Below are positions 4,236 through 51,892 of a stretch of DNA of 64,000 bases, one piece after another. Positions within the stretch are counted from its first letter, which is position 1, and every line of letters begins with the position of its first letter. The translations under genes were made by a program, and so were the position numbers. Origin of the DNA: Dimorphilus gyrociliatus. Its lineage: Eukaryota; Animalia; Annelida. The DNA is taken from NCBI GenBank assembly GCA_904063045.1, contig CAJFCJ010000019.1, positions 2,123,700-2,187,699 on the forward strand. Reading direction: 5' to 3'. The notes below the pieces were generated by a model. The model searched no databases. It was not told the DNA's origin and was given only the letters and a program-made list of their open reading frames with translations.

Positions 4236-5457
4236 TTAATAGCCAAGCTGACATAATGTTGTTCTCTCTACGGGTGGGGGCAGAGCACTATCCTCCTCTT
4301 GTTTAAGCTTTGCTAATTGTTCCTCATATTGAGTAAAAATTTTATCTTCGTATAAAATCAACGCATCAATATAGACTTTCAAAGGTTCCGCCCATGGACT
4401 ACATGCTCTTAAATCTGCTCTAGCCTCCCTTAAAGGTATCATTCTTTCTTTCATTATACACGCTAGACAGAATGCCGACGATCTACTCATTCCTTTATCC
4501 GAAAATACCAAAACTCTCCCGCCTAAATACTTGTGGCTCTGAATAAAGTTAGTAACATCGTCAAAATACGGATTTATATCTGAGGAATTTTCATCATTGA
4601 CGTAAACTTGAACTAAATTTTTACCCACATCGCAGAAACTATTCAATGAAATGGTTTTATAAATATATGCTTTCTTATATAGTAACCTATTCAATTATAC
4701 TAACAAAGTTCCAGGAGTTTGTGTACAGTTTACATGTCCAGTTATTTTTAAGTCTTTTTGAATGTAAGCTGCATTAGCTTGACGCCAATCACCGAGATAA
4801 AGGAGGTTTGGTATAACTTCTATTGGATAGGTTTTAAATTCATCCAATTCCTTAGGTGTCCACAAAATCTTTTGCGTTCTCATAAAAGGGTATAAAGCGG
4901 AAAAATGCTCGTAACCACCCTTCAGAATTAAAACTGTAAATCTACTGCCCATTAGCCATATTCTTTGACTGCAAGTGATGGCGTCTCCTATAGGGGTTTA
5001 CATAAAAAAATTAATAAGCAAATACAAAATAAATGAAATATTGATATTTGCAATTTTTAGAACAGTACCATTGTCTCTTATAGATGCAGTATTATTATCG
5101 TAAATAATTATTGTCTGTTTACATTCCAATTCCGCTTCTTCTGGAACTATATATTCGTTATGTTCATTCTATTGGGTGTTTTTTTTTTCCAAAGTGAAAA
5201 ATTGGCTTAAAAAATTAATTACAAAGATAACTCACCATTTTACAATTTTTCGCCATTAATATATGACTTTCATTAAAGTCATGCTCGCTTCTTGAATCTA
5301 AAATTATAAAGATCTTTAACGAAAAAAAGAGGATAATTGAAACCCGGTTCATACCTAATAAAAGTACATAATTAGGATCGCTAATTGCTGGATATTGGCC
5401 TTTCCTATTTATTAAATTGTAAAGTTCAGTTGGAAGTATAAAGTCAATTGGTTTCAT
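4236..5457 (-). CDS. STYXL1: STYXL1/MK-STYX rhodanese + dual-specificity pseudophosphatase, multi-exon
   Basis: Motifs PTELYNLIN, DPNYVLLLDSR, ILKGGYEHFSALYPFMRTQKILWTPKELDEFKTYPIEVIP. The active-site loop VFSDKGMSRS has Ser in place of the catalytic Cys. The start at 5457 is assumed. Confidence 0.92.
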
Positions 5458-6299
5458 GATGTTAGCAAACGTTTCTCTCTTATTCGCAAATAATAAAGGA
5501 GGTGGACGATTTGTTTGTATTGACAGTGCGTATCCATAGCAACAGCCAAGAAGAGAAAGATCTATTGAAATCGAAAATAAAGAAACAAATTGATTCAAAT
5601 ACGCTATAATTTAAAATTTACACGAAAAAAATGGATTTCTTTAAGTGGAAAAATAAGAGAAATTTTAGGGAAGGTTACGGGGAAAGGAGGTGATATTAAC
5701 TGTTTAAAATGCTGAAAACGGAACTATTCTAATGTAAAAAACCCATTTAAAGAGGATATGAGAATTTTTTGATAATTATACAACAAACAGAATATTCATT
5801 TTATAAATAATATACTGTATACCTAATATATAGACTTATTTAAAAGACGGTGCTTTTACAAATCATCATAAGAGAGAGAGAGGAGCAAAGCTAACAATTA
5901 AAGACAAGCTTAAAAATCAATAAATTATTATTTGTTACAATAAAATATATATATATAGTATTTATATCTTAATACTTTTATTTTAGCAATTGTTTTTGTT
6001 TCGTAAGAGATAACTTAAGTTTTAATGTAAATATCATGAGAAATTAAAGATATATATATATATATTCGGTTAATTTTCTCATAGATGATAAAGCTTTTTT
6101 TATCATTTTTTTAATTGGTAACAAGAGGGAATTGACCTAAGTTGAACGTTTTGTATCAAACATGTAGTTTCATAGGCTTAGTATTTTGAATACGAAGATG
6201 CGCTTTCTCATTGATAACCTTCACCTTGTTTGGACAGCAGACGACTGTCGAAGGTGATTAAAATCGTCTTCGCTAAATTCCTTGCATTCTTGATACTAA

Positions 6300-9200
6300 A
6301 TGGTAAGAATTACTAATCATCAAGCTATTATTTACCAAAAATTAAGTTTACGTAGGCTAGTTATGATTAAATGATGCATTTCGTATATTTCTTACTAAAA
6401 TCCTAATTATTTTTCAGGATCCAACTAATTATAAAGGCTTTAAAAGTAAAGATGCTCTGAATATTTTAAAAAGCGAATTAGAAGATGAACTTAGGGAACA
6501 TATAGCAGCTAATAAACCGAAAAAATCGTCTCTTCCTTGCGTCTCTTTTTTAAGATTAAAAGACGTTCAGTCTCAGCTAAGTTGGGTTGGCGTATCTTAT
6601 ATCATTATCGGCTGTGCACTTCTGATAATTGCTTATCTTTGCCAGATCCATCCGTAAGATATAGTAAAATTAATAAAAGTTTAATATTATTAATGAATTT
6701 TTATGCATTATTTGTGCTTTCAGCAATAATTGGATAATTGGACAAGTTTTTGTTCTTGTCTTATGTTTACTAGTCAATTTTTTTATTGCAAGTTGGATTC
6801 ATTTAGAAAAGAGGAATGAATTAGTAAGAAGAGTGCGTAATGCTATTAGTTCCGTAGAAGGTAACAGACAAATGATACAATTATTAAATATACTGTATCA
6901 CCTCTATTTCATTCGCTAACAAATACAATTCTTAAAATTAATTATAATCTTTAGAATGTGCCCAAAATTCTAATTGGACCTATTCAGACTACATCGACTT
7001 GAACTGTCCCTTATCACCTTGTGTTAGTTTACAGTGGACGATAAGGGATGATGAATTAGTTAATCTACCAGTCACGTTACTAGTTGAAGGAGATACAATC
7101 CTTCTTCGGCCTGGTCAGCATGTTCCTGGCGCATGTCAGATATTGGAGGTAGAAAATTTAATATATATGCAAAAGCGTACACATGTATTGACAACTTAAT
7201 TAATTACCTAATTAAGTTTTCTAAAATTAAGCCTTTTCTTTTTCTTTTGCAAAACCAAGCTATTATTCTATTCTTTTCAGTCAAAGAATAATTACGCTAC
7301 AGAACTTCGTGCAGGAGACATTTTTTCACCTAAAATTCTATCGGAAGACGTTCAACAACCTACCTGTAGAGAATCCTTAAAACCAGTTTATTACATGATG
7401 AAAGAAACTCCATTCTGTTCAACTTTAAAGCAAATATTAAATAATAATTCAAAAAGATTGCCGAGTGTCTTGGAGAAGGAGTTGAATTGGTGCTATTCAA
7501 GATGCGTTGAATTTATTTTAATACCAGGAATGTTTGTAAGTTTAAAGAGAAATTGTAATAGCATTTATTGTCTTTTTTTATATTGTCTCTTTTTATTCTA
7601 TTTGGACTAGTTGGTTACCGGTTTAATAGGAGTCTTTAGATATTGTCTTAACGGTGAAGAAGGTGGCTATTGGACAGACGTATTTTTAGTTATACCAGTA
7701 ATTATTATAGAATTGCTAATGAAAATGTTTAATTTACATAAATTTACATAAATTCCTAATATTTTTAGATTAATTGCGTATTACCATTCTTCTGTTTAAT
7801 CTTGCCATCATTATGGATATTTTTATATTGTTTTGGTATTGTACTAATACTTGCTCGTTTCGAGTATAGCATCAAAGTAAGTTAATTCGTTTATTTAATA
7901 GAATAATTAATTAATTAATATATTATACAGGGAAACGATACGAATAGCCTTAAAATTGGTGATTTGTTGAAGAACACTTGTAATTTTATATTAGGAAAGC
8001 ATAATAATCTATGTTGGACTAGCAATGTTTGTCACGCTCTTGGTCATCTTACAGTTCGTATTCTATTTCCCAAGAAAATGCATCACATTAATAATTTTCT
8101 TTCCTATCTGAAAATATCTTCTTAAATAATATAGTCTCTATGCTGCGTTGACAAAAAAGGAATTCTATCCTGGCCGAATCCAACAGCGGAGAAAATTTTC
8201 TTCCTCAGGAATGAAAAAGCACCAAAAACTCGTCAAAATTATCATTCAGACACCGAAGTAAATAATACTACCAACAATCCACTTATAGTGGTATCGGAAG
8301 GCGAAGAAGAAAAGGCTTATGCTGATGGCGGTATATTTGCATAATTATATAATGTTTAATGTAATTTAGCTCTCTCTTTCTTTCCCTTTTAGTCGATTAT
8401 GAATTTGAAAGTCGTTTTGAGGTATTAGATTTAACTCAGGATCCAACTGTAAGATTATAGTTGTTAATTGAAAATTAAACATTTATTCTCTTATTTCTCT
8501 TACTGAAATAGAATGAAAATAGTCTAGCATTTGACGATCCCAAGTGGAAATTTTACATTAATTCATTAAAACCATTGGTATGTATAATAAGATATAATTT
8601 TTCGATCATAGATAGATTCATCTTTTATCTAATAGTATCATCATTATTTATAGGGTTTAAATATTCTTTTAAATTCCTGTAATGATAATACCGTCCAAGA
8701 ATATACCAGATTCGCTGATCATACAACCTGCACATCAATGAAGCGTGAGGAGATGATTCCAGTTCTTAATAGGCGGTACGTAAAGCGTAAAAACTAATTT
8801 TAGACAATATAATTAGATGTAGTAGTCGAACAGTCTTAGAGTCATCGAACTGCTAGCTACGGTTAGGAAAAGGTATAGTTATTGATAAATAAATAAACAA
8901 AAATACACCAATAAATAAATTTTATATTATAAACAAATATGAATAAATAGAGGCCATAACTAATCGCGATAAATGAATAAAAAAAAAAAGAAAAGAAAAT
9001 CTTTTTTCTTAATTGTGCCGAGTGCTGTGATTAATTTTCATTATTAGCTACTAGTATTTACTATTTGCTATTATCAACAAGATATGGATTATCCTTATCC
9101 TTATCAATATAATCCAATATATATATATATATATATAAATATAAATATATATTAGAGCTTTATATAATTTTTTATATGATTTTTGTTTTTCCTATTTGAA

Positions 9201-11755
9201 TCAATCCTTATTTTCTATCAATTTATTCAAATAATATATATTTACCATAATTAATTAGTTAATTTATTTATTTATTCGATTAATTTTCTCAATGTTTTTT
9301 TTTTTTGGTGTTTTTAATTTTGTTCTAATTAGAACAAAAAATTTATTTTCTCTAATGATTTTTCGTTCTTTTTTTTAATAAAAAAAAATATATAGATGCT
9401 TCTGCGAATTGGCCCGACAAATTGGATTTCGTGATGGAGCAACAAAAAATTTTCGTACAATAAATTCATTTGCTATGTATAGGAATTCTGTACGGTTTTT
9501 CACATATATATATATATATATTTATTATTATTCAATGATTTTACATTCTAAAACAAACTGCAGGCTACAGATTCCGGTTTCCGAGATATTAATCAACGTT
9601 CAAGAAGTATTATTCAATATAAAATGCCGACTCCTAATATCTTTTCGGTTTTGGCTGAGGATGAACAACTTCAAATTAATCAGTTAATGTCACATGGTAC
9701 AGCTGATTTATTATTAGACACCTGTACTGACTTCTGGGATGGAGAGGATGTTGGAATCCTCAGCGAAAGTGACCGTAACAAGATTCTGGATTTTTATCAA
9801 AGAACTTCAATGAGTGCCTATTGCACTGCTTTTGCTTATCGACCCTTATCAGTCAAACATGATTCTGAGAAGAGAGACATTTATATTGAAATACCTGAGG
9901 GTATCTCAATTCACGATCACGACACACTTTCTTTGAAGAGTTCTTTATCAATTTGCGATGATGTAGATAACAAATATGGCTTACAAAGCCATCAGGTTTT
10001 TATTGGAATGATTACGATGCAATACCAAGCCCAACAAGATGTCGTTGGCCTTATAGAAGATCTAGAAAAAGCATGTATTAGATTCGTCCATTTCTCGAAA
10101 GAAAATGAGCTTCGTAGTCGTGTATTTAGTGAGAAAATGGGCCTAGAAGCCGGTTGGAATTGCCATATATCGCTTGAGAATAATCCAGATAATAATTTTG
10201 AGAGTTTCGAATTATTGGCGGAAGAGACCCAAAATCGAACTAGTATTGATGAGAAATTTGACGAGGATTATGGATTGATGAATCGAGCTAAATTACCAAG
10301 AGGTATTAAGAATGTAAGACCTCATTTAAAGAAGGTTGATAATGTTCCTTTACTCGTTTCCCTGTTCACCGATTGCACTCCTGATACTATTAAAGAGATG
10401 ATTGAAATTCTTCAAGAGAACAATGACGTTGCAGTGTGTATGGGTAGTTCCGTTTCATCTCACAATTCAAGCTGCTTCCTTCAATCCGACGCTAGTATTG
10501 CTATTGAACCATTGTACCCTTCCGTTTGTTTGCAAAAGAATGAAAATAATAAGACTTTGCGACCCCAAAAGCTACAAGCACTACTCAACTCATTACCTTG
10601 CGTTTTATCGTGCCATCGTTCTGATAAATTTGACATCATTAAGTTGATTGCGCTATCTAGGCACTGGTGTGAGATGACTAGACGAACTCTGCAATTCTTC
10701 TTTGCCAGCTATGCAGCCTTAGCGCTTTTACAGTTTTTGGCAGCAGTACTATGGTTACCACCTATTCTAGGCTTAGATCATGTACTTTGGATTACCTTCC
10801 TTGTTATTCCTATCATGTCTGTATCCGGTATTCGTATAAATTATGATAAAGATTACGAGCACCGAGCACTTGGAAAGCGATATAAAAATTTGATAAACTT
10901 CTTCTATTCAGCTTGGTTAGTTGGTGTAAGATTCCTGCCGATTCTTATCATATGTTTGATATGCCATGGTATGAATTTATATAGTTTTTGCAAGCAAATT
11001 CATCAGGTCCTACATAATACGAATCAAACCAATTATACTCACAACTGTCACATAATTCTTGGTAACAAAGACTACAGTGTTCAATATTCCTATAATGGAT
11101 GGTTGACAGGTTGGTAATAGCTTTTTTATGGAATATATTTGAATGTATAGTTGGGAAAAGATTTCATTAATCACTTATCCTTTCTTTCTTTTTTCTTGTA
11201 CAGATTTCCGAAAGCAGTTTATTTTGTGTCATAATTTCACAGCTTTTATATTCGTGTTAAATCTAGTGGTCACATCAGCTAGTTTTATGTATAAACTTCA
11301 ATATGTATGGAAAAAAGTACCGTTTATTAGCCCGCTTTGGTTAATTATTTCACTTCCTACGTAAGAATATTTATTTCAATCATCAAATTTTCATAAAAAA
11401 TTGGTTTCTATTAATTATTTATGTTTGCCCTTTATTCTTTTCAGATTATTGTTCCAACTTCTTTATTCTTTTATTGATATCACAATCAATAGTGATCAGT
11501 CCATTGTTGGCTCTCAAGTAAAACATATATCAACAGTATCATGGTGCTTAGCCGCAGCTTCCCCTCTCATTCAATTAATCGTCTGTGAGATTGTAAAATG
11601 GCAGGAAATAAGGTATGATTGTAGAAAATAAGATAAGCCTTTGATAAAATATGTCTAAATCTTATCAATTGAAATATTACAGATGGAATAAGCGATACGA
11701 AAGAAGAGTCAGATTAGACTTTGGAACAAAGTTGGGAATGAATTCACCTTTTTAA
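6300..11755 (+). CDS. TMEM94: TMEM94 (P-type ATPase-like ER membrane protein), many small exons
   Basis: ATG 6300-6302 is spliced to 6418 (M|DPTNYKGF). Motifs RDDELVNLPVTLLVEGD, CVDKKGILSWPNP, VFIGMITMQYQA, RFVHFSKENELRSRVFSEKMGLEAGWNCHISL and the C-terminal DFGTKLGMNSPF*. Confidence 0.95.
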
Positions 11756-42323: not shown

Positions 42324-44057
42324 TTACGTCCATTTATCGTCAAGGGGCTGTATACAAATAGGGCATGAATTAGCCACTCTACGCCATTTATCTATGCACT
42401 TAGTGTGAAATATATGATTACAAAGAAGCTGAACTGATAGAACTTTGACGTTTCTTTCGCAACAGATACAACAATCCATATTCTCTATAGGTTCAGCTGT
42501 ATGGAGATTTTTATAAATAAGTATTCCAAGAGTTCGCCTACATCTTCTAAGTTTCATTTCAGTATACTCAAAAGTTTTGGCGACGTCTATCAAAAGTTCA
42601 GGATTTTCTCTTCCTTTATCAAGAGATTTAATATAGTCGTATCCCAAAATGGGCATAATAGTTATCATATCCTTTTTACATATATTCTCGATTTTATATT
42701 TCCCGAGTACTGCCTTTAGTGCAATCATCTTTCTTTCTTCAATATTCCATGGTAAATAAACTCGAAATTGTTCATAAAGTTGGCAAACATTATAAATTGT
42801 TTGTAAAGCTATCTTCATTTGATATTCTTTCTTAAGAAGTACTATTATAAAGGGTAGAACAAAACAATATACAAATTGGCATAGTATTATTGATGAACAA
42901 GATAATCTTCCATAAGAAGGATAATAACTATAATCAATGGGCAGATAAGAGATATTGAAAAACAATAAAATAGTTAATACAACACAAAAGGAAAGAAAAT
43001 TCTCGCCATATCTTACTGTAATTAAACATATTATAATTGGAAGTCTGTATATTAAAAATGAATTAAATATCAAGAAATTATAAGTGGAGAATACGCATTC
43101 ATATATCATTATGACAGTAAGGATGATGGATAGAAAGTCACTGAAGAAATAATTGTTTAAATCTAGAGCATAAATTAGTATTAATATCCAATATGAGACA
43201 AGGAATTTCTTTAAATGTTTTAAAATATAGTTGAAACGATTGCTATGTAGAATAAATACTCCATTTTGCGATTTGGGTAAATAATACTCAGCCAAATAGT
43301 TTCCTTCTTTCGATGATGAATTTAAATATCCAATCTTCATTGTATCTTTAAACGACTGTTGAAATAGTAGTAATAATTCTTGAGAGAATAATACCGAAGT
43401 ATCAAAGATTATCTTTAATCCTTTTTCAGATCGGAATTTATTAAATTCATTTACTGATCCTAGGTTAATTCTTGTCAGTTCATCAATTATCTTTCCCAAC
43501 CAATCGTTAATAGAAAGTTGAGAAGATGAAGTATAAACAGAAATTGTTGAAATTTCTTGATCGTAATCTTTCATTTCCTTTACTAAAACAATTTGGGATT
43601 TTGCCCAATTATTCTCCTGACAAACATTCAACATTTTTGAACAATTATACTCCTTTACTTTAATATTTCTACGAGATTTAGATGAAAGAAACTCATTCCA
43701 TCTATTGTTGAAAATCTTATCCTCTTTAGTATTATACAGTACTTTAACCAATGAAATGGTTAAAAGATGAAAATCATACTTGCTATATTTCTCTAGAGAT
43801 TTATTATACCTATCTCGAGTTATAAGATAAAATATTTCGCACTTCCTCTCTAAATATAAACTTGCTATTTTAGCGCGATTTTCTAATTGCATAGTCTCAA
43901 GATAAACCTTTTTAAAAGCGTAATTCGCGTTTGTATAATAAGTTGTAATATCTAATCCATAATATACGAAAAGCAATAATAATTCAGCTAAAAGTAAACT
44001 TAATAGTCCTGCTAATTTGTTTTTTATAAAATCCAGTAGATTGTTCACAATTAACAT
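42324..44057 (-). CDS. RNF103-like copy A: intronless multi-TM protein with C-terminal RING-H2
   Basis: 577 aa ORF with an N-terminal hydrophobic anchor, a lumenal WNEFL...YNC-X6-C region, about 5-6 TM segments and CCICCE...LLCNHIFHTKCIDKWRRVANSCPIC. Confidence 0.85.
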   Translation of the reverse strand: MLIVNNLLDFIKNKLAGLLSLLLAELLLLFVYYGLDITTYYTNANYAFKKVYLETMQLENRAKIASLYLERKCEIFYLITRDRYNKSLEKYSKYDFHLLTISLVKVLYNTKEDKIFNNRWNEFLSSKSRRNIKVKEYNCSKMLNVCQENNWAKSQIVLVKEMKDYDQEISTISVYTSSSQLSINDWLGKIIDELTRINLGSVNEFNKFRSEKGLKIIFDTSVLFSQELLLLFQQSFKDTMKIGYLNSSSKEGNYLAEYYLPKSQNGVFILHSNRFNYILKHLKKFLVSYWILILIYALDLNNYFFSDFLSIILTVIMIYECVFSTYNFLIFNSFLIYRLPIIICLITVRYGENFLSFCVVLTILLFFNISYLPIDYSYYPSYGRLSCSSIILCQFVYCFVLPFIIVLLKKEYQMKIALQTIYNVCQLYEQFRVYLPWNIEERKMIALKAVLGKYKIENICKKDMITIMPILGYDYIKSLDKGRENPELLIDVAKTFEYTEMKLRRCRRTLGILIYKNLHTAEPIENMDCCICCERNVKVLSVQLLCNHIFHTKCIDKWRRVANSCPICIQPLDDKWT

Positions 44058-45171
44058 TGTATAAATTCAGTAATTAAGCCTATTCGAAAAAGTTACTATT
44101 TTTAAAAGTTTAAGATTCGATGATGTGGTTTTATAGATGATGAATTTCTTTTTTGAAAAGGATTAGCTAATCGCCTTAAGTATTTCTTAGAATTCCTAAG
44201 CTAAAAACTTCCAAGATGTCTTAAGTCGTTTCTAAGTCTTTTTTCTATATAGGATGTAATAAAAATTGGATAAGAGAGAAAGAAGGAACATCCTCTCCTA
44301 TAGCCAAGTTTTATAGACTGTGTTAAAAGATCGATTATTGTTGACTATCTCCCCTGTCTAACTGTCTGTGTCTTGATGTATTTGTTTTTTTTCCCCAGGC
44401 ATAGAATGAATCAATGGTATTATCGTAAATCGTATAATCCCTACCCACTAAATTTACTTATGAAAAATTGTTTTCCTATTTTATATAATAATCAAAATTT
44501 CTGATGGGTAATTTGTCTTGTTAACTAAGTCTAAAAAACTTATATTAATGGGCAACTTCGGTAGTGTATCTTACTCTATTCTCATAGGATTGTTCATAGA
44601 GTAATCTAGCATAATCCAATCCCAAAGAGCCTATTATTCAATAGCTATTTCTCACATAGTATGTTAGAGATGTTTGTGTCATTTAGAAACTTAATGGATT
44701 CTCGTCGGACAGTTCGTGAGAGTTTTTCAAGTTTTTTTTTATCTAATATAATGATAGCCCATTTTATTAAATATACTATCTTAAGGCATCAGTGTTACTG
44801 TCTCGTCAATGCTACTTAGGATACAGGAGATATCCTTATTCCACTGTAGAAAAAAGCTTCCATCCAATTTAAACTTTGTCCTGTCCTGCTAATATTAAGT
44901 ATTAATCTGTAGCCGTATTCCAAAACACATTCACTTCAATACTGTTCGTTAAGCAAACCTAATAAGGATTTATTGTTTGAACGTTTCCATGTCGAAATCT
45001 ATTTTCCAGCATATAATCCTCTTGTTCTTTCATAAGTTCTGGTTTACTTAAATTTGTGTCTTCATGAATGGTTCACGTTCACTTCTCCAAATTAAACCTA
45101 GATTGTTGAAGAGACGTAACGATTCGTGGAATTTAATCATCAACAACTATTCTCTTATGTTTTTTATTTAT

Positions 45172-46867
45172 CTATTCCATAGGACTTCTACAATAGCGGC
45201 AAGAATAATTGATTCTACGCCATCTTCTTATACAATAACAATGAAATATATGTTTGCAACGAAGTTGAACTGAACGTTTATTAGAGTTTTTCCTTAAGCA
45301 AATGCAACAGTCAGTCTCTTCTAATCTTCTTTCGGTTAAAATTTTCAATTCTATAATTATCTTAACGTCTATCATTAGACGTTTAATCCTAACTAAAAGT
45401 TCTGTAGATCGATATCTGCGAACCACGTTCTGTAGACGTCTAACATCATCAAAATTTGGTCTTCTTGCAAGTGCTTCAATGAAATCATAGCCTAATGTAC
45501 ATTATACATATTGTAGTCGCATAATTGATCTATCTTATACAGTTTAAATAGATATTGAAGACTATCTGATCCTTTCATTTTCCTCCTTTCTGATAATACA
45601 AAATAATATTTGTAATTTGTAATAGGTATGCGAAAGGGTACATTAATTAGAGAATACACAGATTGATTACAATTACAAGGATACCTTCGTTCACAAATAC
45701 CAATTGAAGAAAGGAGTGAATGAAATTTAGGGGTTACTATTAACAAAGTAAACATTATAAATTTGTAGTACGACATATGAAAATAATTACCTAAAAACAA
45801 AACGTATATATAATCGGGAGGTAAAGCGGAAAAGTATAGATAAGCTGATAGCAGTATTATGCCTAATAATAAACCTTGAATTTTCTTCCCAGTTCCATAC
45901 AAGTTCCGTTGCTTCCATTTAAAACTATTGCGTATGCAATTGAACAACATAGAAAGGTAAGTGATACTAGTGTATATAAAATATAAATTATCGGACGAGC
46001 GTTCTGTAGAAGCTTAAGGCATGTAAAATGATTAAGCAAATCGTTGTAAATATAAGAGTATCTGTTATACAAGAGATCTATACCGTTGTTATTATAGGTA
46101 TGCATTTTTGGTTTGTGCCATCCAGTAGCTGAATTGGCCTTGACATTGGCAAATTTCGCTATTCTATGATATTTTACCCGAAGTCTAATTAATAGCTCTT
46201 TGGGGAATATATCTTCATCACTAAAAATCATTTTCCATCCGTCTTTACGTCGCATTTCATGATACTGCTCCGATGATGAGATTATAGGCGTTCTTAATTC
46301 AAATTCTTTCGTAATAATCCAACTTTTAATGAAATCGAACTATTTCTAGGATAAACTGCAAATGTAAGAGGACTATCATACCCAGACACCGCAGGTGCAA
46401 CTAAAGCTATTTGCGGCGAACCCTTTTTGTGTGAATGGCAGAATTTTTGGCAAGTTGAGCAGTTATATTCATAAATATTATTTATATTCGGTTGTTTTAT
46501 CCTCAGGAACTCTTCCCATCTATCATTCAGTACTTTATCAATTTGTTCGTTTTATAAAATTCTCACAAGTTGAACGTGATATTTATTAAAATTGAATAGA
46601 TGATATCCTTCGCTCTTACCGATGATTGAAACTGGTGAGAGATTGAAAATCATTCTCGTCTAGAAATTGATGAGTAGGCTCCCTCTTCAGCATAAACTTG
46701 TAAGCTCCTTGAAGGGTTTTGAAATCGTTATCGAACACATGAAAATACGTAGTGAAATCAAGAAATGGAATAATAGGCAAAAACACAATACTCCTAATAA
46801 AATACACTATTTTATCATATAATTGCAGAAAAACATTGTTCTTAAGGCTATGTTTGTATTCAATCAT
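45172..46867 (-). pseudogene. RNF103-like copy B: disabled paralogue of copies A and C
   Basis: Homologous blocks (LDFTTYF, QLVRIL*NEQ...DRWEEFL...YNCSTC, GWKMIFSD, LPPDYIY, YKIDQLC, LGYDFIEAL, CCIC...CKHIFHCYCIRRW...CRYC) are spread over several frames. There is an in-frame TAA at 46554-46552 and about four frame switches. Confidence 0.8.
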
Positions 46868-46927
46868 AAATACTAGTTATCACGTAATTTATACCAGTTA
46901 TTTCTCGAAATTTCAAATAATAACAAA

Positions 46928-48385
46928 CTATTTATTCTTATTATAGATTTCGGAGTTGTATCTATTTCTATAGTCTTCATTTAATTTATAATTATCATCA
47001 AACTCTAAATTTTCATTGGTAGGAGCAGCCTTCCTAAAGTTTCTAGCATATTTCAATACATTTTTAAAATGACAAAAGAGAAAAATTTCATACTGATAGA
47101 GACGAATAAAGAACAAACTTATTTGTAAGATTACATAACGAAAAATGACAGTATTACTTAATTGAAAATACGAATAGAAAACAAAATTCGATAAGCAAAA
47201 GTACAATAGAAATCTTGAAGTACAATAAAGCTTTCCATCAATAAAGAGATAGACGTAATCTATTGGATAATTTGATTGGTTCATAAATATATGTATATAC
47301 AAGCATAAAATCAATAGATAACATAATTTATTAATGATATTATGCGTTATATTTCGAAAATAATGGTTAATTGTAGTAATTATATTAGTATCTTGAATAT
47401 CGTAACAAATTATCAATAAGATTATTAATGGAAATCTTTCCATAAAATATGATATTGAAATGAAAGGATTAAAGGGGAAAATAAACTTTTCAGTAAGGAT
47501 TACAGAAGCAAAAGTAATGAAGAATACATCTTCTAGGAATAGGAAAAGTATTATTATACAAAAGCTAAGAATTATTAACCAATAAGATAAGATAAATCTT
47601 TTCCATAATGTATGCGAAAATGAATAACGATTATTATAGAATATATAAATACCCTCCCCTTTTGATTCGGGTAGATAGTTCTTTACTATAAAATCTCCAT
47701 TTATTGTACTCGATCTTATATAGGCAAATTTTAATTTATCTCTATAAGACAATCCTAATGATAATAAAGACTCTTTGTTTGTTCTCTTTGAAATGTCGTA
47801 AATTATTTTCCAACCTGTCTTTGACCGGAAATCATTTAAATCTTCAACAGTTGAAATAATTGGAATATTTAATTTCCATTGTTCTATTTTTAACCATTCA
47901 GTTAAAGAAAGAGATAAAGATTTAGGATATATTGCAATCCTAATTGATCGCCCATTATTAATTAGTTGTAAAGAAATATGTGACAATTTCAAATCGTTTT
48001 GAACACAATCATCCACAGTTTTCCAACAATTATATCGGACTAGATGAATTGGACAGAATTGTTTCGTTGCAAGAAACTCTTTCCATTTATCCTTCAATTC
48101 AATATCTTCATTTTCACTATAAAGCATCATTATCATTGAAACGTTTAATTGACAAAAATTATTCTCGTATAAATTGTCGTCGAGTTCCTTATAATTGAAA
48201 TATTTAAACTTATTATCGTGAAATACATGATTTTCTTTAAGGTTTTCCAATTTAAAAATATTCTTAAACGTTTCATTAAAGATATCATTTCTATTGACGT
48301 GATAGGTTGTAACATCCAATAATCTTGGTAAAAGACTAAATATTATTATATCAAAGAAGATGATTAGACGAAATTTTATATCCAT
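46928..48385 (-). CDS. RNF103-like copy C: intronless, multi-TM, lacks RING
   Basis: 485 aa ORF collinear with copy A (LDVTTYH, WKEFL, YNCW, GWKIIYD, YLPES, YPIDYVY). It stops before the RING region. Confidence 0.82.
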   Translation of the reverse strand: MDIKFRLIIFFDIIIFSLLPRLLDVTTYHVNRNDIFNETFKNIFKLENLKENHVFHDNKFKYFNYKELDDNLYENNFCQLNVSMIMMLYSENEDIELKDKWKEFLATKQFCPIHLVRYNCWKTVDDCVQNDLKLSHISLQLINNGRSIRIAIYPKSLSLSLTEWLKIEQWKLNIPIISTVEDLNDFRSKTGWKIIYDISKRTNKESLLSLGLSYRDKLKFAYIRSSTINGDFIVKNYLPESKGEGIYIFYNNRYSFSHTLWKRFILSYWLIILSFCIIILFLFLEDVFFITFASVILTEKFIFPFNPFISISYFMERFPLIILLIICYDIQDTNIITTINHYFRNITHNIINKLCYLLILCLYIHIFMNQSNYPIDYVYLFIDGKLYCTSRFLLYFCLSNFVFYSYFQLSNTVIFRYVILQISLFFIRLYQYEIFLFCHFKNVLKYARNFRKAAPTNENLEFDDNYKLNEDYRNRYNSEIYNKNK

Positions 48386-48900
48386 AGCTATCTAAAATTC
48401 AATTAAGAAAATTTTAACATTCTGAACAAATGTTCTTTGAAATCTAAACTGGTAATAGTCACGAGTGATACAAAAAATTCAACTGTTTGCGCAACTCTGA
48501 CTAATAATATTGCGTAATAGACAGAAACATTTGGGAACTTTCAATAGGCTTATGATTTAAGAATGAATAATAATTTCTCACTCCCATTGTATACTTTGTT
48601 GGCTAAATGCTCAAGAAATTTTATAGGTATTGAGCAAACGAGATTCGATAATCGAAGTTTAATCGCTGTCTATCTATAATGAAACTACTAATGACAAATA
48701 TCGTTTGTTATACTAGTCCCTATAGTGATAAATCATCCACAATTCGGCAATTATTAACATTTTTATTGCAGTAATAGTTTCAGAAGCTGCTGTGATAATA
48801 TTCATGAAAAGCAGCTTATAGAAGAGCTAGCATTTCTATAATATATGTCTAGATGAGTCCAAAAAAATCGCACTTTATGAAAAGTAAATGAACACCCGTA

Positions 48901-50441
48901 TTATATTTCGTGAAGATGTTCATCTCTGATTATGATTTCTCTACAAAGTCGACAGCTGTTTTGGTATGCGTACCAATCTTGAATACATTTCGAATGGTAA
49001 ATATGCTTGCAATTGAGCTGCAGAAATTCTCCTTTTTTAGGCTGTTCACCACAGAAACAAGTGTTTCCCTCTTGTTCCTTATTCGGTACAACAATCGTTA
49101 ATTTTTTGCTAAGATCTGTATCACGTGTTTTCTTTGGATCATATTCACCCACTCCGAACTCAAAGTCGGGTATAAATTGGGCAATAACATTCAATATATT
49201 CTGTAGTATTCTCTCTCTTTCAAGGTTCTCTCTTTCAATTTCTTCTAGCCTTTCTCGCTGTCTTTTCAATTCGAGATAGCCTATATCAACAATTCCATAT
49301 AGCCGCTTACTCCTAATGCCTAATATATAAGACAGACAATTTGTATAATCAGCCTTCACTGTTTTGACTTTAACTACGTTTTCCCACCATTTTATGGTAT
49401 CTTTTATAGAACTAAGACCATTAAATGTTAATATTCTAAGGATGGTCTCCAGATGAAAAATTATCAAGATCGCTACTGTTATATCACCGAAACTTCCCAC
49501 TGAAGTTTTTAAGTAGTAATCTAAAGAATTAAATGATAGTTCTTCACCAATAATTCGACTGTACTCGTATTCACTCTTATTTCTATATACTCTCATCTGT
49601 GACCTTCTTGAACCTAAATACTTTTTGGCAACCCATTCTGTTGTGTTCAAGTAACCAAACTTGATTTCATGGGAGTATTTCATTTGCAAAAAATGCAAAT
49701 ATTTTGGTGGGTGTTTAAAGGGTAATGCAAAAAGGATTTTAGGGGACTTATCATCAGCAAATGACTTTAAAGTCATTTTATCAGAAATCACTGATAATTC
49801 TTTGTTACTAGATAATTCTCGAATCATCCAATCTTTAATTGACAAATCAAAAAGCGCGCTATAAGAGAGGAAAACGTGCCGTTTTGAATGGTTACTTACA
49901 GGAGGTAATATCAAAATAATCTTGGAAGATATCCAAAGCTTTTTACGGCACATATCATTATTTTTCCGACAATGATAAACTCCGTGTTTAATAGGCCAAG
50001 AGAGATTCAAATTTATAAACTCTTGCCATTTTTTTTCAAGTATTTTATCAAATTTCCCACCATGGTGAACCTATTGGGTAAACTTGTGAACATTTGCAAT
50101 CAGAATTCAATGATTCTAACCTTAATTAGCCATACAAATTTCCCCATTTCTTGTATAGCATCTTCAAGATTTGAGTTTTCTCCTGGAAAATTGGCTGCTG
50201 TTTTTCCAGTTCTATCATATGGACTGTCTTCTGTTAAGTCCCCAGAATCTTCCAGAAATTTTATAAGGTCTAATTTATCATGTTCATTGGAATATATTAT
50301 TCCTCTATCATTCAATAAGTGTCTTATTTTGTGAATATTCAGACTTCCTAGATTTGAGTTTTTTGATAGATGTAACCATTTAATTAAAATTAGAAGATAT
50401 ATACATCCTAAAGGGACTGTAATCTTTTTAAAAGAAACCAT
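48901..50441 (-). CDS. RNF103-like copy D with variant RING-H2, 2 exons
   Basis: Exons 50441-50121 and 50070-48901 joined by a 50 bp GT-AG intron (WLIK|VHHGG). N-terminal IRHLLNDRGIIY...LEDSGDL resembles RNF103 LKTILECRGL...VEKSGDL. C-terminal CFC...LNCKHIYHSKCIQDW...CRLC. Confidence 0.82.
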
Positions 50442-50557
50442 ATTCTCCCCTATCCTATGCGCTCTTTTTCAAACCGGTAATGTAGAAACCATTCGGTTGA
50501 ACGGTTATGTGGTTATCTCAGCTCAAGTAAACCACGATTCGAATATACACACCAAAA

Positions 50558-51892
50558 ATGCAATATCGTAAATTTTACACATATTTTCAAATAGCTTTCA
50601 AATATCCTTTCATGTATATTATATATATGTATAGTCTATCATTTCTACTGAAAAGGACTCTCAACTATGAAGTTGGAGGAAAGAAACAACTTGACATCAA
50701 TGAATTTCCTGCTTCAACATTAAAAACAATTCTGGATCATAGAGGTGTAAGCCACAGAGGTTCACTCTCAAAACTTTCGTTAAAAGATTTAATTCAATTA
50801 AGTGGAGGATTATCCAGAGAAGAATCTGAAAATATAAATTTTAGACAAATTTCACCAATCTACTTTCAGAATTCCAAAGACTACAATTATTTTGTTAATA
50901 ACGAAAGTAGGAGTGTTTGGTTAGTTCACTTCCTCGTTTTTGGCAAAGAAAGTAAATCCTCAGCGTCAGAATGGGACAAAATGTTAAAACTAGGATTATC
51001 TTGGCCCTTGCGATATGGGATACATAAGTGTATGTCTACAAACGATAACTGTCCGTCTCATAGAAACAGAGTCTCAACAATATCCTTGTTGATCCCACCA
51101 ACAAAAGAAGGTGTAAAAATGAGTAGCGTACATTTTCCCAACACTCCGTCACTACTGCTAAAAGATTGGATTGGAGAAGAACTAGCAAAGATAAGATTAG
51201 CTACGGTAAAAAATAGAACCAAATTTAAAGATTGGATTCTAGATGATGGTATGAAAATTGTCATCTCATCACCTCTTCCAATTCCTCCTACATTTCTTAT
51301 ATTTCTCAGAATTCATTATCAAGGGATCATACAATTTGCTTTTATAAATACCAGGTCAAATATAGGGAGGGATATTGGTAAAGGAATTTTTTATGTTCCT
51401 GGAGAAACAAGCGTTTTTATATATGATGGACCTAATTCTATTAATTTTGGTAAGATTAAGAGCCAGGGCATATTCTATTCATATAAATCAATGAATTTAT
51501 TCCTTAGATCTTTAATTCTAAGTTATTTCGACATTACGTTATTCTTAATGTTAAACGTGACTCTAGCTTACTTGTTACAAATATTATCCTACAATTGTGG
51601 AAGGAGTACACCATTGTTAATTCGAGAGTTGCTCATTTGCAATATATTCATAATATTTATTATAACAGTATTAATGATCGTAAGTCCAATCTTGAAAGCT
51701 CTTTTTAGCTTCTTACAAATATCAATAGTAAATATCAAATATACATTTATAATATCTGCAATAAGACAGGAATTTATGTACTATGGAGTACTGAATTTGG
51801 ATGCGTTGTCTCTTAAGTTTATAGGTATATTGGCCATGTCAAACGTGTTATATAATATAGGAAATATATTTCAATTTATCCATACTATGTAA
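50558..51892 (+). CDS. RNF103-like copy E: intronless, lacks RING
   Basis: 444 aa ORF with LKTILDHRGVSHRG, VWLVH, W..M...LSWPLRYGIHKC, PPTFLIFLRIHYQGIIQFAFIN and SMNLFLRSL, all matching the RNF103 N-terminal and TM region. It ends after the TM segments. Confidence 0.85.
   Translation: MQYRKFYTYFQIAFKYPFMYIIYMYSLSFLLKRTLNYEVGGKKQLDINEFPASTLKTILDHRGVSHRGSLSKLSLKDLIQLSGGLSREESENINFRQISPIYFQNSKDYNYFVNNESRSVWLVHFLVFGKESKSSASEWDKMLKLGLSWPLRYGIHKCMSTNDNCPSHRNRVSTISLLIPPTKEGVKMSSVHFPNTPSLLLKDWIGEELAKIRLATVKNRTKFKDWILDDGMKIVISSPLPIPPTFLIFLRIHYQGIIQFAFINTRSNIGRDIGKGIFYVPGETSVFIYDGPNSINFGKIKSQGIFYSYKSMNLFLRSLILSYFDITLFLMLNVTLAYLLQILSYNCGRSTPLLIRELLICNIFIIFIITVLMIVSPILKALFSFLQISIVNIKYTFIISAIRQEFMYYGVLNLDALSLKFIGILAMSNVLYNIGNIFQFIHTM

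Follow-up and report, generated by a model that had tools for sequence, protein, structure and literature searches.

Tandem RNF103-like genes between LYAR and SEC24 in Dimorphilus gyrociliatus: a probable multiplied RNF103 locus and its fast-evolving family

The stretch analysed here, called the window, is 64,000 nt of the annelid Dimorphilus gyrociliatus (assembly GCA_904063045.1, contig CAJFCJ010000019.1, positions 2,123,700 to 2,187,699 of the forward strand). Between the genes for LYAR (zf-LYAR, 2e-14) and SEC24 it holds a tandem array of genes related to RNF103 (Kf-1), a ubiquitin ligase of the endoplasmic reticulum (ER) membrane. An earlier reading of the letters alone, the sequence-only reading, had proposed five related units in this interval, A to D on the minus strand and E on the plus strand, and the list of open reading frames (ORFs) and the frame translations place all five there, with A, C, D and E intact and B broken (Table 1). 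The open frames reach 580, 487, 453 and 389 amino acids (aa), whereas none of 300 shuffled versions of this region, at its 30% GC, gave a frame longer than 154 aa. The array is very AT-rich, with a GC content of 28-31% compared with 38-40% for SEC24. The interval between A and B (window 44058-45171, 1.1 kb) has no ORF of 80 aa or more, and the other spacers of the array are much shorter, at 60-515 bp. The spacer shared by D and E may contain a bidirectional promoter, with possible co-regulation of the two genes.

Table 1. Units of the array, syntenic units of the second species and further family copies in D. gyrociliatus. Positions without prefix are window positions.
Feature	Location	Strand	Description	Evidence
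Unit A	42324..44057	-	intact, without introns, 577 aa	ORF, Pfam, BLASTP, hydropathy
Unit B	45172..46867	-	pseudogene	frame translations, Pfam RING
Unit C	46928..48385	-	intact, without introns, 485 aa, RING-less	ORF, Pfam, BLASTP, tree
Unit D exon 2	48901..50070	-	thioredoxin-like lumen, one transmembrane-like segment, charged coiled stretch, RING-H2	
Unit D intron	50071..50120	-	50 bp, GT..AG	frame translation, deposited model
Unit D exon 1	50121..50441	-	N-terminal anchor and RNF103-type helix pair (LLNDRGI...SGDL)	frame translation, deposited model
D-E spacer	50442..50557		116 bp separating the start codons of D and E, which point away from each other	
Unit E	50558..51892	+	intact, without introns, 444 aa, RING-less	ORF, Pfam, model, profile searches
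E'	second species		RING-less	
D'	second species		RING-less, inverted relative to its neighbours	
C'	second species		RING-less	
B'	second species, L024:11914-12474		186-aa ORF: last transmembrane segment, linker and intact RING-H2 only	
Copies F, G	C45		tandem, full-length with RING	
Mosaic partial F/G copy	C45:25000-25949 (L015:1-950)		upstream of F	
C43 copy	L030:1699-4731	-	1011-aa frame, without introns, with RING	
C77 copy	L032:1753-4395	-	881-aa frame, without introns, with RING	
C64 copy	C64		382 aa, RING-less, 52% identical to C103 copy	
C103 copy	C103		341 aa, RING-less, 52% identical to C64 copy	
Family fragment	C35			

The units have a common plan of anchor, luminal domain, transmembrane (TM) part and, in some, a RING-H2 finger, as the sequence-only reading had described it. 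In a simple Kyte-Doolittle scan, which underlies the topology given here, the anchor, a luminal domain of ~290 aa and the TM cluster look alike in A, C and E, in the copies F and G from another contig and in canonical RNF103 proteins; unit D has a single TM-like segment after its lumen. Pfam places RING-H2 above threshold in A, B and D and finds none in C or E, downstream of which there is no RING remnant either. Unit A joins its N-terminal anchor to a tandem thioredoxin-like lumen (residues ~35-286), a TM cluster (~303-410) and a cytosolic RING-H2 (529-568) with 8/8 zinc ligands kept. Anchor, lumen and TM cluster are present in C, and E has in addition a helix pair between the anchor and its tandem thioredoxin-like lumen.

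Unit D is represented by a deposited gene model, DgyrCDS11817 (496 aa), an exact match to exon 1 (50441-50121) plus exon 2 (50070-48904); our searches used the exons separately, and the joined protein comes from the deposited record only. Exon 1 by itself is weakly similar to the N-terminus of E (E-value 0.008), and the alignment with canonical RNF103 backs its placement; it was mis-spread in the luminal alignment and was therefore left out there. The RING of D (window 48940-49056) has an atypical first zinc-ligand pair, C-x-C instead of C-x2-C, with the remaining six ligands canonical and a Pfam score still above threshold.

Unit B was rightly called a pseudogene from the outset: its N-terminal, luminal, middle, TM and RING pieces are spread over three frames, with at least three in-frame stops and at least four frame changes. 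The RING stretch (45172-45426) is still open with 8/8 ligands, and a frame change severs it from the TM piece upstream. We considered but set aside the idea that C and the open B RING (or C' and B' in the second species) form one spliced gene. B' has its own last TM segment, which would duplicate the end of C'; in D. gyrociliatus the frame change splits the TM piece of B from its RING; and an open stretch of 108 codons is unsurprising where the remainder of B has one lesion in roughly 70 codons.

The units are homologous to each other and related to RNF103. In an all-against-all BLASTP comparison A aligns with C at 31% over 389 aa (3e-39), D with E at 3e-21, A and C with E at 6e-9 and 1e-8, and the RINGs of A and B at 5e-15. 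Alignments of such length contradict the earlier statement that only short motifs align, while the two subfamilies proposed with it, A/B/C and D/E, are recovered in the tree described below.

The relation to RNF103 itself is borne out at the level of profiles, fold and shape. The luminal region alone, free of TM segments and RING, was aligned and used in an exhaustive profile search, which gave 37 matches from seven animal phyla; all the named ones are RNF103 or RNF103-like. These named matches (3e-14 to 2e-7) belong to a nemertean (Tubulanus, 3e-14), bivalves (Pecten, Mya, Potamilus), a brachiopod (Lingula), a hemichordate (Ptychodera), a crinoid (Antedon), amphioxus (Branchiostoma) and a fish (Polyodon), and the matched region lies at about residues 105-320 of 610-760-aa proteins with a C-terminal RING. 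A profile built from A, C, F and G alone matches the canonical RNF103 profile at 97.9% (5e-13, hhalign). The joint alignment with canonical RNF103 is colinear through the anchor, the helix pair, a 'VWLV' strand, C-x6-C, 'DW[IL]', 'PP.F...F[GA]..N' and the TM cluster. Within it the helix pair, 'LKxxLxxRGV...SGD', is kept in D and E and degenerate in A, C, F and G, and the core residues kept are the Trp residues, C-x6-C and the PP.F block. E is the copy nearest to canonical RNF103. Word-seeded homologue searches with the whole of A and with the E lumen returned no matches, which carries no information on novelty because low-complexity, AT-biased sequence defeats word seeding; a PDB sequence search with A returned generic RING domains only.

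Modelled with AlphaFold (pLDDT 63, core 70-79), the E lumen consists of two beta-alpha-beta...beta-beta-alpha thioredoxin-like modules. Foldseek compared this model with the PDB and gave 102 matches at E<=1e-3, among them ERdj5 (8e-8), PDI bb', Mpd1p and QSOX, and all the PDB matches are PDI-family tandem thioredoxin proteins. A shape search of the ESM Atlas put an RNF103 cluster first (TM-score 0.65 over 251 residues, including the N-terminal helices), and a language-model search likewise indicated RNF103. Neither the copies nor canonical RNF103 have a Cys at the place of the CxxC active site, after strand beta2; their conserved cysteines are those of the family-specific C-x6-C, after the next strand. 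Redox catalysis is unlikely because of the missing CxxC, and the luminal domain is probably redox-inactive and substrate-binding, like the b domain of PDI. The fold lists also admit a different ancestry, in which another ER tandem-thioredoxin protein gained a RING, since DNAJC16, ERdj5 and PDI appear in the PDB and Atlas lists at similar TM-scores. Such an origin is already disfavoured, and we consider it highly improbable: every named profile match is RNF103, with no DnaJ or PDI protein among them, the units have neither a DnaJ domain nor CxxC, their helix pair, C-x6-C, TM cluster and terminal RING-H2 are colinear with RNF103, and reverse searches with two canonical RNF103 proteins retrieve E and D.

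Those canonical queries, from Tubulanus and Lingula, were run against the whole 77.9-Mb D. gyrociliatus assembly. Both find E best, at 4e-20 and 9e-18 over residues 9-427, then D (7e-13) and then, weakly, A; the other matches are unrelated RING fingers. The sequence-only reading had suggested looking in the genome for the canonical RNF103. No separate canonical RNF103 was found in the assembly, where D and E are the nearest relatives, and the array is therefore the RNF103 locus itself, not an addition to it. That these are the only RNF103-type genes in the genome depends on the completeness of the assembly. Neither is the family limited to five, as A and the luminal profile, searched against the genome, extend it to at least 11 loci on seven contigs, with at least 10 intact frames of 341-1011 codons at 30% GC. 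The A, D, F, G, C43 and C77 copies bear a RING, as does pseudogene B, whereas the C, E, C64 and C103 copies are RING-less, derived relatives that cannot themselves be ligases. Several hundred extra residues lie between lumen and RING in the C43 and C77 copies; they are internally repetitive between both copies and have no Pfam match. Most copies are missing from public protein sets, in line with the earlier impression of an undescribed system: A, C, E, F and G have no exact match in the public protein collection, in which only D and a truncated F are deposited.

In the mosaic copy upstream of F, pieces with 71-100% identity to F are fused with one of 75% identity to G and with G-downstream sequence, which points to a recent unequal exchange at that locus. 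The deposited F model, DgyrCDS14514 (L015:1002-1852, 256 aa), follows F for 238 codons from its start, then leaves out 80 bp, closes with 19 further residues and so stops short of the TM cluster. Either the model is wrong or it represents an isoform made of the lumen alone. An NLR-type cluster adjoins these copies. Upstream of F and G (C45:18221-24676; L013:3221-5332, 5412-9677) it has an intronless 703-aa NACHT ORF (Pfam 1.8e-12) followed by a 1421-aa leucine-rich-repeat (LRR)-like ORF, and a 782-aa LRR ORF precedes the NACHT ORF.

For comparison we used a 20.5-kb Logan contig from sample SRR23372229, a second, related species, which is syntenic from SEC24 to LYAR. The sequence-only reading had considered that a sister species might carry the same five copies, and this holds for part of the array: C, D and E have orthologues, but no counterpart of the A lumen was found in the second species, B' is only a stump of TM segment and RING from the A/B lineage, and D' is inverted and RING-less. 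Gene content thus differs between the two species, which supports the birth-and-death turnover proposed earlier. B' lies just downstream of the RING-less C' on the same strand and resembles A and B to about the same degree; it could be a mini-ligase in its own right or half of a gene that is split. The intron of D' has the same position as that of D, splitting the frame after 'WLIK', and a copy of the F/G type, FG', lies on another second-species contig. Flanking proteins are 83-89% identical between the species and array units 24-43%. Three second-species contigs are 99.98-100% identical and are uninformative on polymorphism.

A maximum-likelihood tree built from the luminal domains separates every dinophilid copy from all canonical sequences, in one clade (100/99) with a long stem, within which the cross-species pairs are E/E' (97/86), D/D' (93/76), C/C' (98/92) and (F,G)+FG' (96/86). 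Four lineages, those of E, D, A/C and F/G, are therefore older than the species split, and these, together with the syntenic C', D' and E', do not allow the expansion to be read as a recent burst. The F/G and C64/C103 pairs, the history of A and B, the inversion of D and the RING loss of D' fall after the split.

The nonsynonymous divergence (dN) between the species is 0.55 for C and 0.89 for E, compared with 0.07-0.10 for SEC24, LYAR and a 514-aa neighbour, which makes it 6-13 times that of the flanking genes; only dN ratios are used here, as between-species synonymous divergence (dS) is either undefined or saturated. The distances between orthologues are as large as the nemertean-to-fish distances of canonical RNF103 or larger, with a lumen identity of 25-34% between the two related worms against 34% between nemertean and fish. 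Over more than 2 substitutions per site, C, D and E have each kept an open frame in both species. For the C64/C103 copies, the youngest and only unsaturated pair, the dN/dS ratio (omega) is 0.39-0.56. Identity is equal in lumen and membrane parts, the lumen diverging no faster than the TM part or the tail. An arms-race signature, which had been read into the divergence of the units, is shown by neither result.

The near-intronless state of the units was correctly noted, the single 50-bp intron being that of D, but it is not unusual, since the nemertean RNF103-like gene is also intron-poor. In Tubulanus the coding sequence of this gene spans three exons, one of which carries residues 161-690. 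The state of the array is therefore inherited and does not point to retroposition.

We consider it likely that the array is the RNF103 (Kf-1) locus, multiplied in the dinophilid lineage by tandem and dispersed duplication into a fast-evolving family of ER-membrane proteins, RING-bearing and RING-less. Each copy keeps the RNF103 plan of signal anchor, two luminal thioredoxin-like modules, TM cluster and, in about half, RING-H2. Homology, architecture, fold class, copy census, synteny and rates are observed; the roles suggested here are inferred from mammalian RNF103, reported to be an ER protein with four TM segments and E3 activity that binds Derlin-1 and VCP (PMC4021871, PMC4971459; the four TM segments are given for human RNF103 in PMC4971459). 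Because of this published activity and binding, the RING-bearing A, D, F, G, C43 and C77 copies would be ubiquitin ligases of the ER-associated degradation (ERAD) type, whose luminal domain selects clients, and the RING-less C, E, C64 and C103 copies would serve as non-catalytic partners, adaptors or competitors of these ligases. Several observations weigh against the proposal. The RING of D has the C-x-C first pair, and F and G do not have the conserved Trp of the E2-binding surface, so that ligase activity is not assured; the second-species locus between SEC24 and LYAR has no full-length RING-bearing copy, and a partnership of RING and RING-less members is unconserved there; no gene model is deposited for A, C, E and G and only a truncated one for F, perhaps because transcript support is weak; and the model of the E lumen is of moderate confidence, built from six sequences.

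The same divergence and turnover could belong to a diversifying recognition system under an arms race, in which the lumen would be the variable surface and the role would lie in immunity, in the surveillance of foreign proteins in the ER or in the compatibility of gametes. The high dN relative to the flanking genes, the copy gain, loss, inversion and RING loss between two species, the pseudogene and the mosaic partial copy, and the position of F and G beside a NACHT gene and long LRR ORFs are all in line with it; so is the portion of the published account of this species cited here, in which expanded families are mostly immune and mostly local copies (PMC7854359). A variable surface is at odds, however, with an omega of 0.39-0.56 in the only unsaturated pair and with a lumen that diverges no faster than the TM part or tail, and the main lineages are old and kept as orthologues, the NLR linkage is found at one locus only, and the three second-species contigs are identical. 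Relaxed constraint after duplication, with sub- or neofunctionalisation, accounts better than a focused arms race for a rate that is high over the whole protein while omega is below 1. A recognition system is unlikely in our judgement, and immunity or gamete roles are speculation.

A further reading is a decaying family, in which most copies are redundant and drifting to pseudogenes and the open frames are remnants. B is already a pseudogene, RINGs have been lost repeatedly (C/C', E/E', D'), the array is richer in AT than SEC24, most copies are unannotated and dN is high. We still hold decay to be rather improbable, as at least 10 frames of 341-1011 codons are open at a GC content where shuffles never exceeded 154, C, D and E have stayed open in both species over the divergence given above, omega is below 1 and the Trp residues, C-x6-C and PP.F block are kept. 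Equally doubtful is a bolder version of the recognition idea, that dinophilids gave up a housekeeping RNF103 for a variable, partly NLR-linked luminal recognition family, for immune-like surveillance of ER clients or for reproductive compatibility, whose RING-less and RING-bearing members form split ligases; pairs such as E-D, C-A and C'-B', B' being the stump, would be candidates.

RNF103 is among the least understood ER-membrane ligases, and in the RNF103 papers, which report E3 activity and binding of Derlin-1 and VCP, we found no discussion of a luminal tandem thioredoxin-like domain. The dinophilid family is a natural experiment on which parts of RNF103 are indispensable: judged by its sequences, the fold core, C-x6-C and the membrane part are kept, and the RING and the helix pair are dispensable. 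Nor would a fast RNF103 family be expected in a genome that has been described as conservative and slow to evolve. The corrected picture is that of a family that replaces RNF103, is older and larger than the earlier reading had it, evolves fast and has lost the RING repeatedly, not of a recent five-gene arms-race array.

Compared with RNF103/Kf-1, the dinophilid proteins have the same order of parts, from the anchor through the helix pair (D, E), the tandem thioredoxin-like lumen with C-x6-C and the TM cluster to the C-terminal RING-H2 where there is one, they match it significantly by sequence profile, profile-profile and structural comparison, and like the nemertean orthologue they are intron-poor. 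To our knowledge RNF103 is one gene elsewhere, whereas dinophilids have at least 11 loci; their proteins have 340-580 aa (two have 881-1011) instead of ~640-760 aa, and their cytosolic linker is much reduced in length; the RING has been lost from about half of them, A, C, F and G are without the helix pair, and the rate is far higher. With the PDI-family ER proteins (ERdj5/DNAJC10, DNAJC16, PDI bb', Mpd1p, QSOX1) the units share a luminal fold of two thioredoxin-like modules in succession (Foldseek probability 1.00, E 8e-8 to 1e-5; Atlas TM-score 0.52-0.63), but they are membrane-anchored and RING-coupled, have no CxxC, DnaJ or Erv domain and give no match at the level of sequence. Lineage-specific tandem expansions of RING and TRIM ligases show local duplication, pseudogenes, fast divergence and loss of the catalytic domain in some copies, and the dinophilid family does the same; the present analysis of this family gave no evidence for positive selection or an immune role. 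It differs from those expansions in being of a multi-pass ER-membrane ligase type with a luminal recognition domain, so far as its sequence tells.

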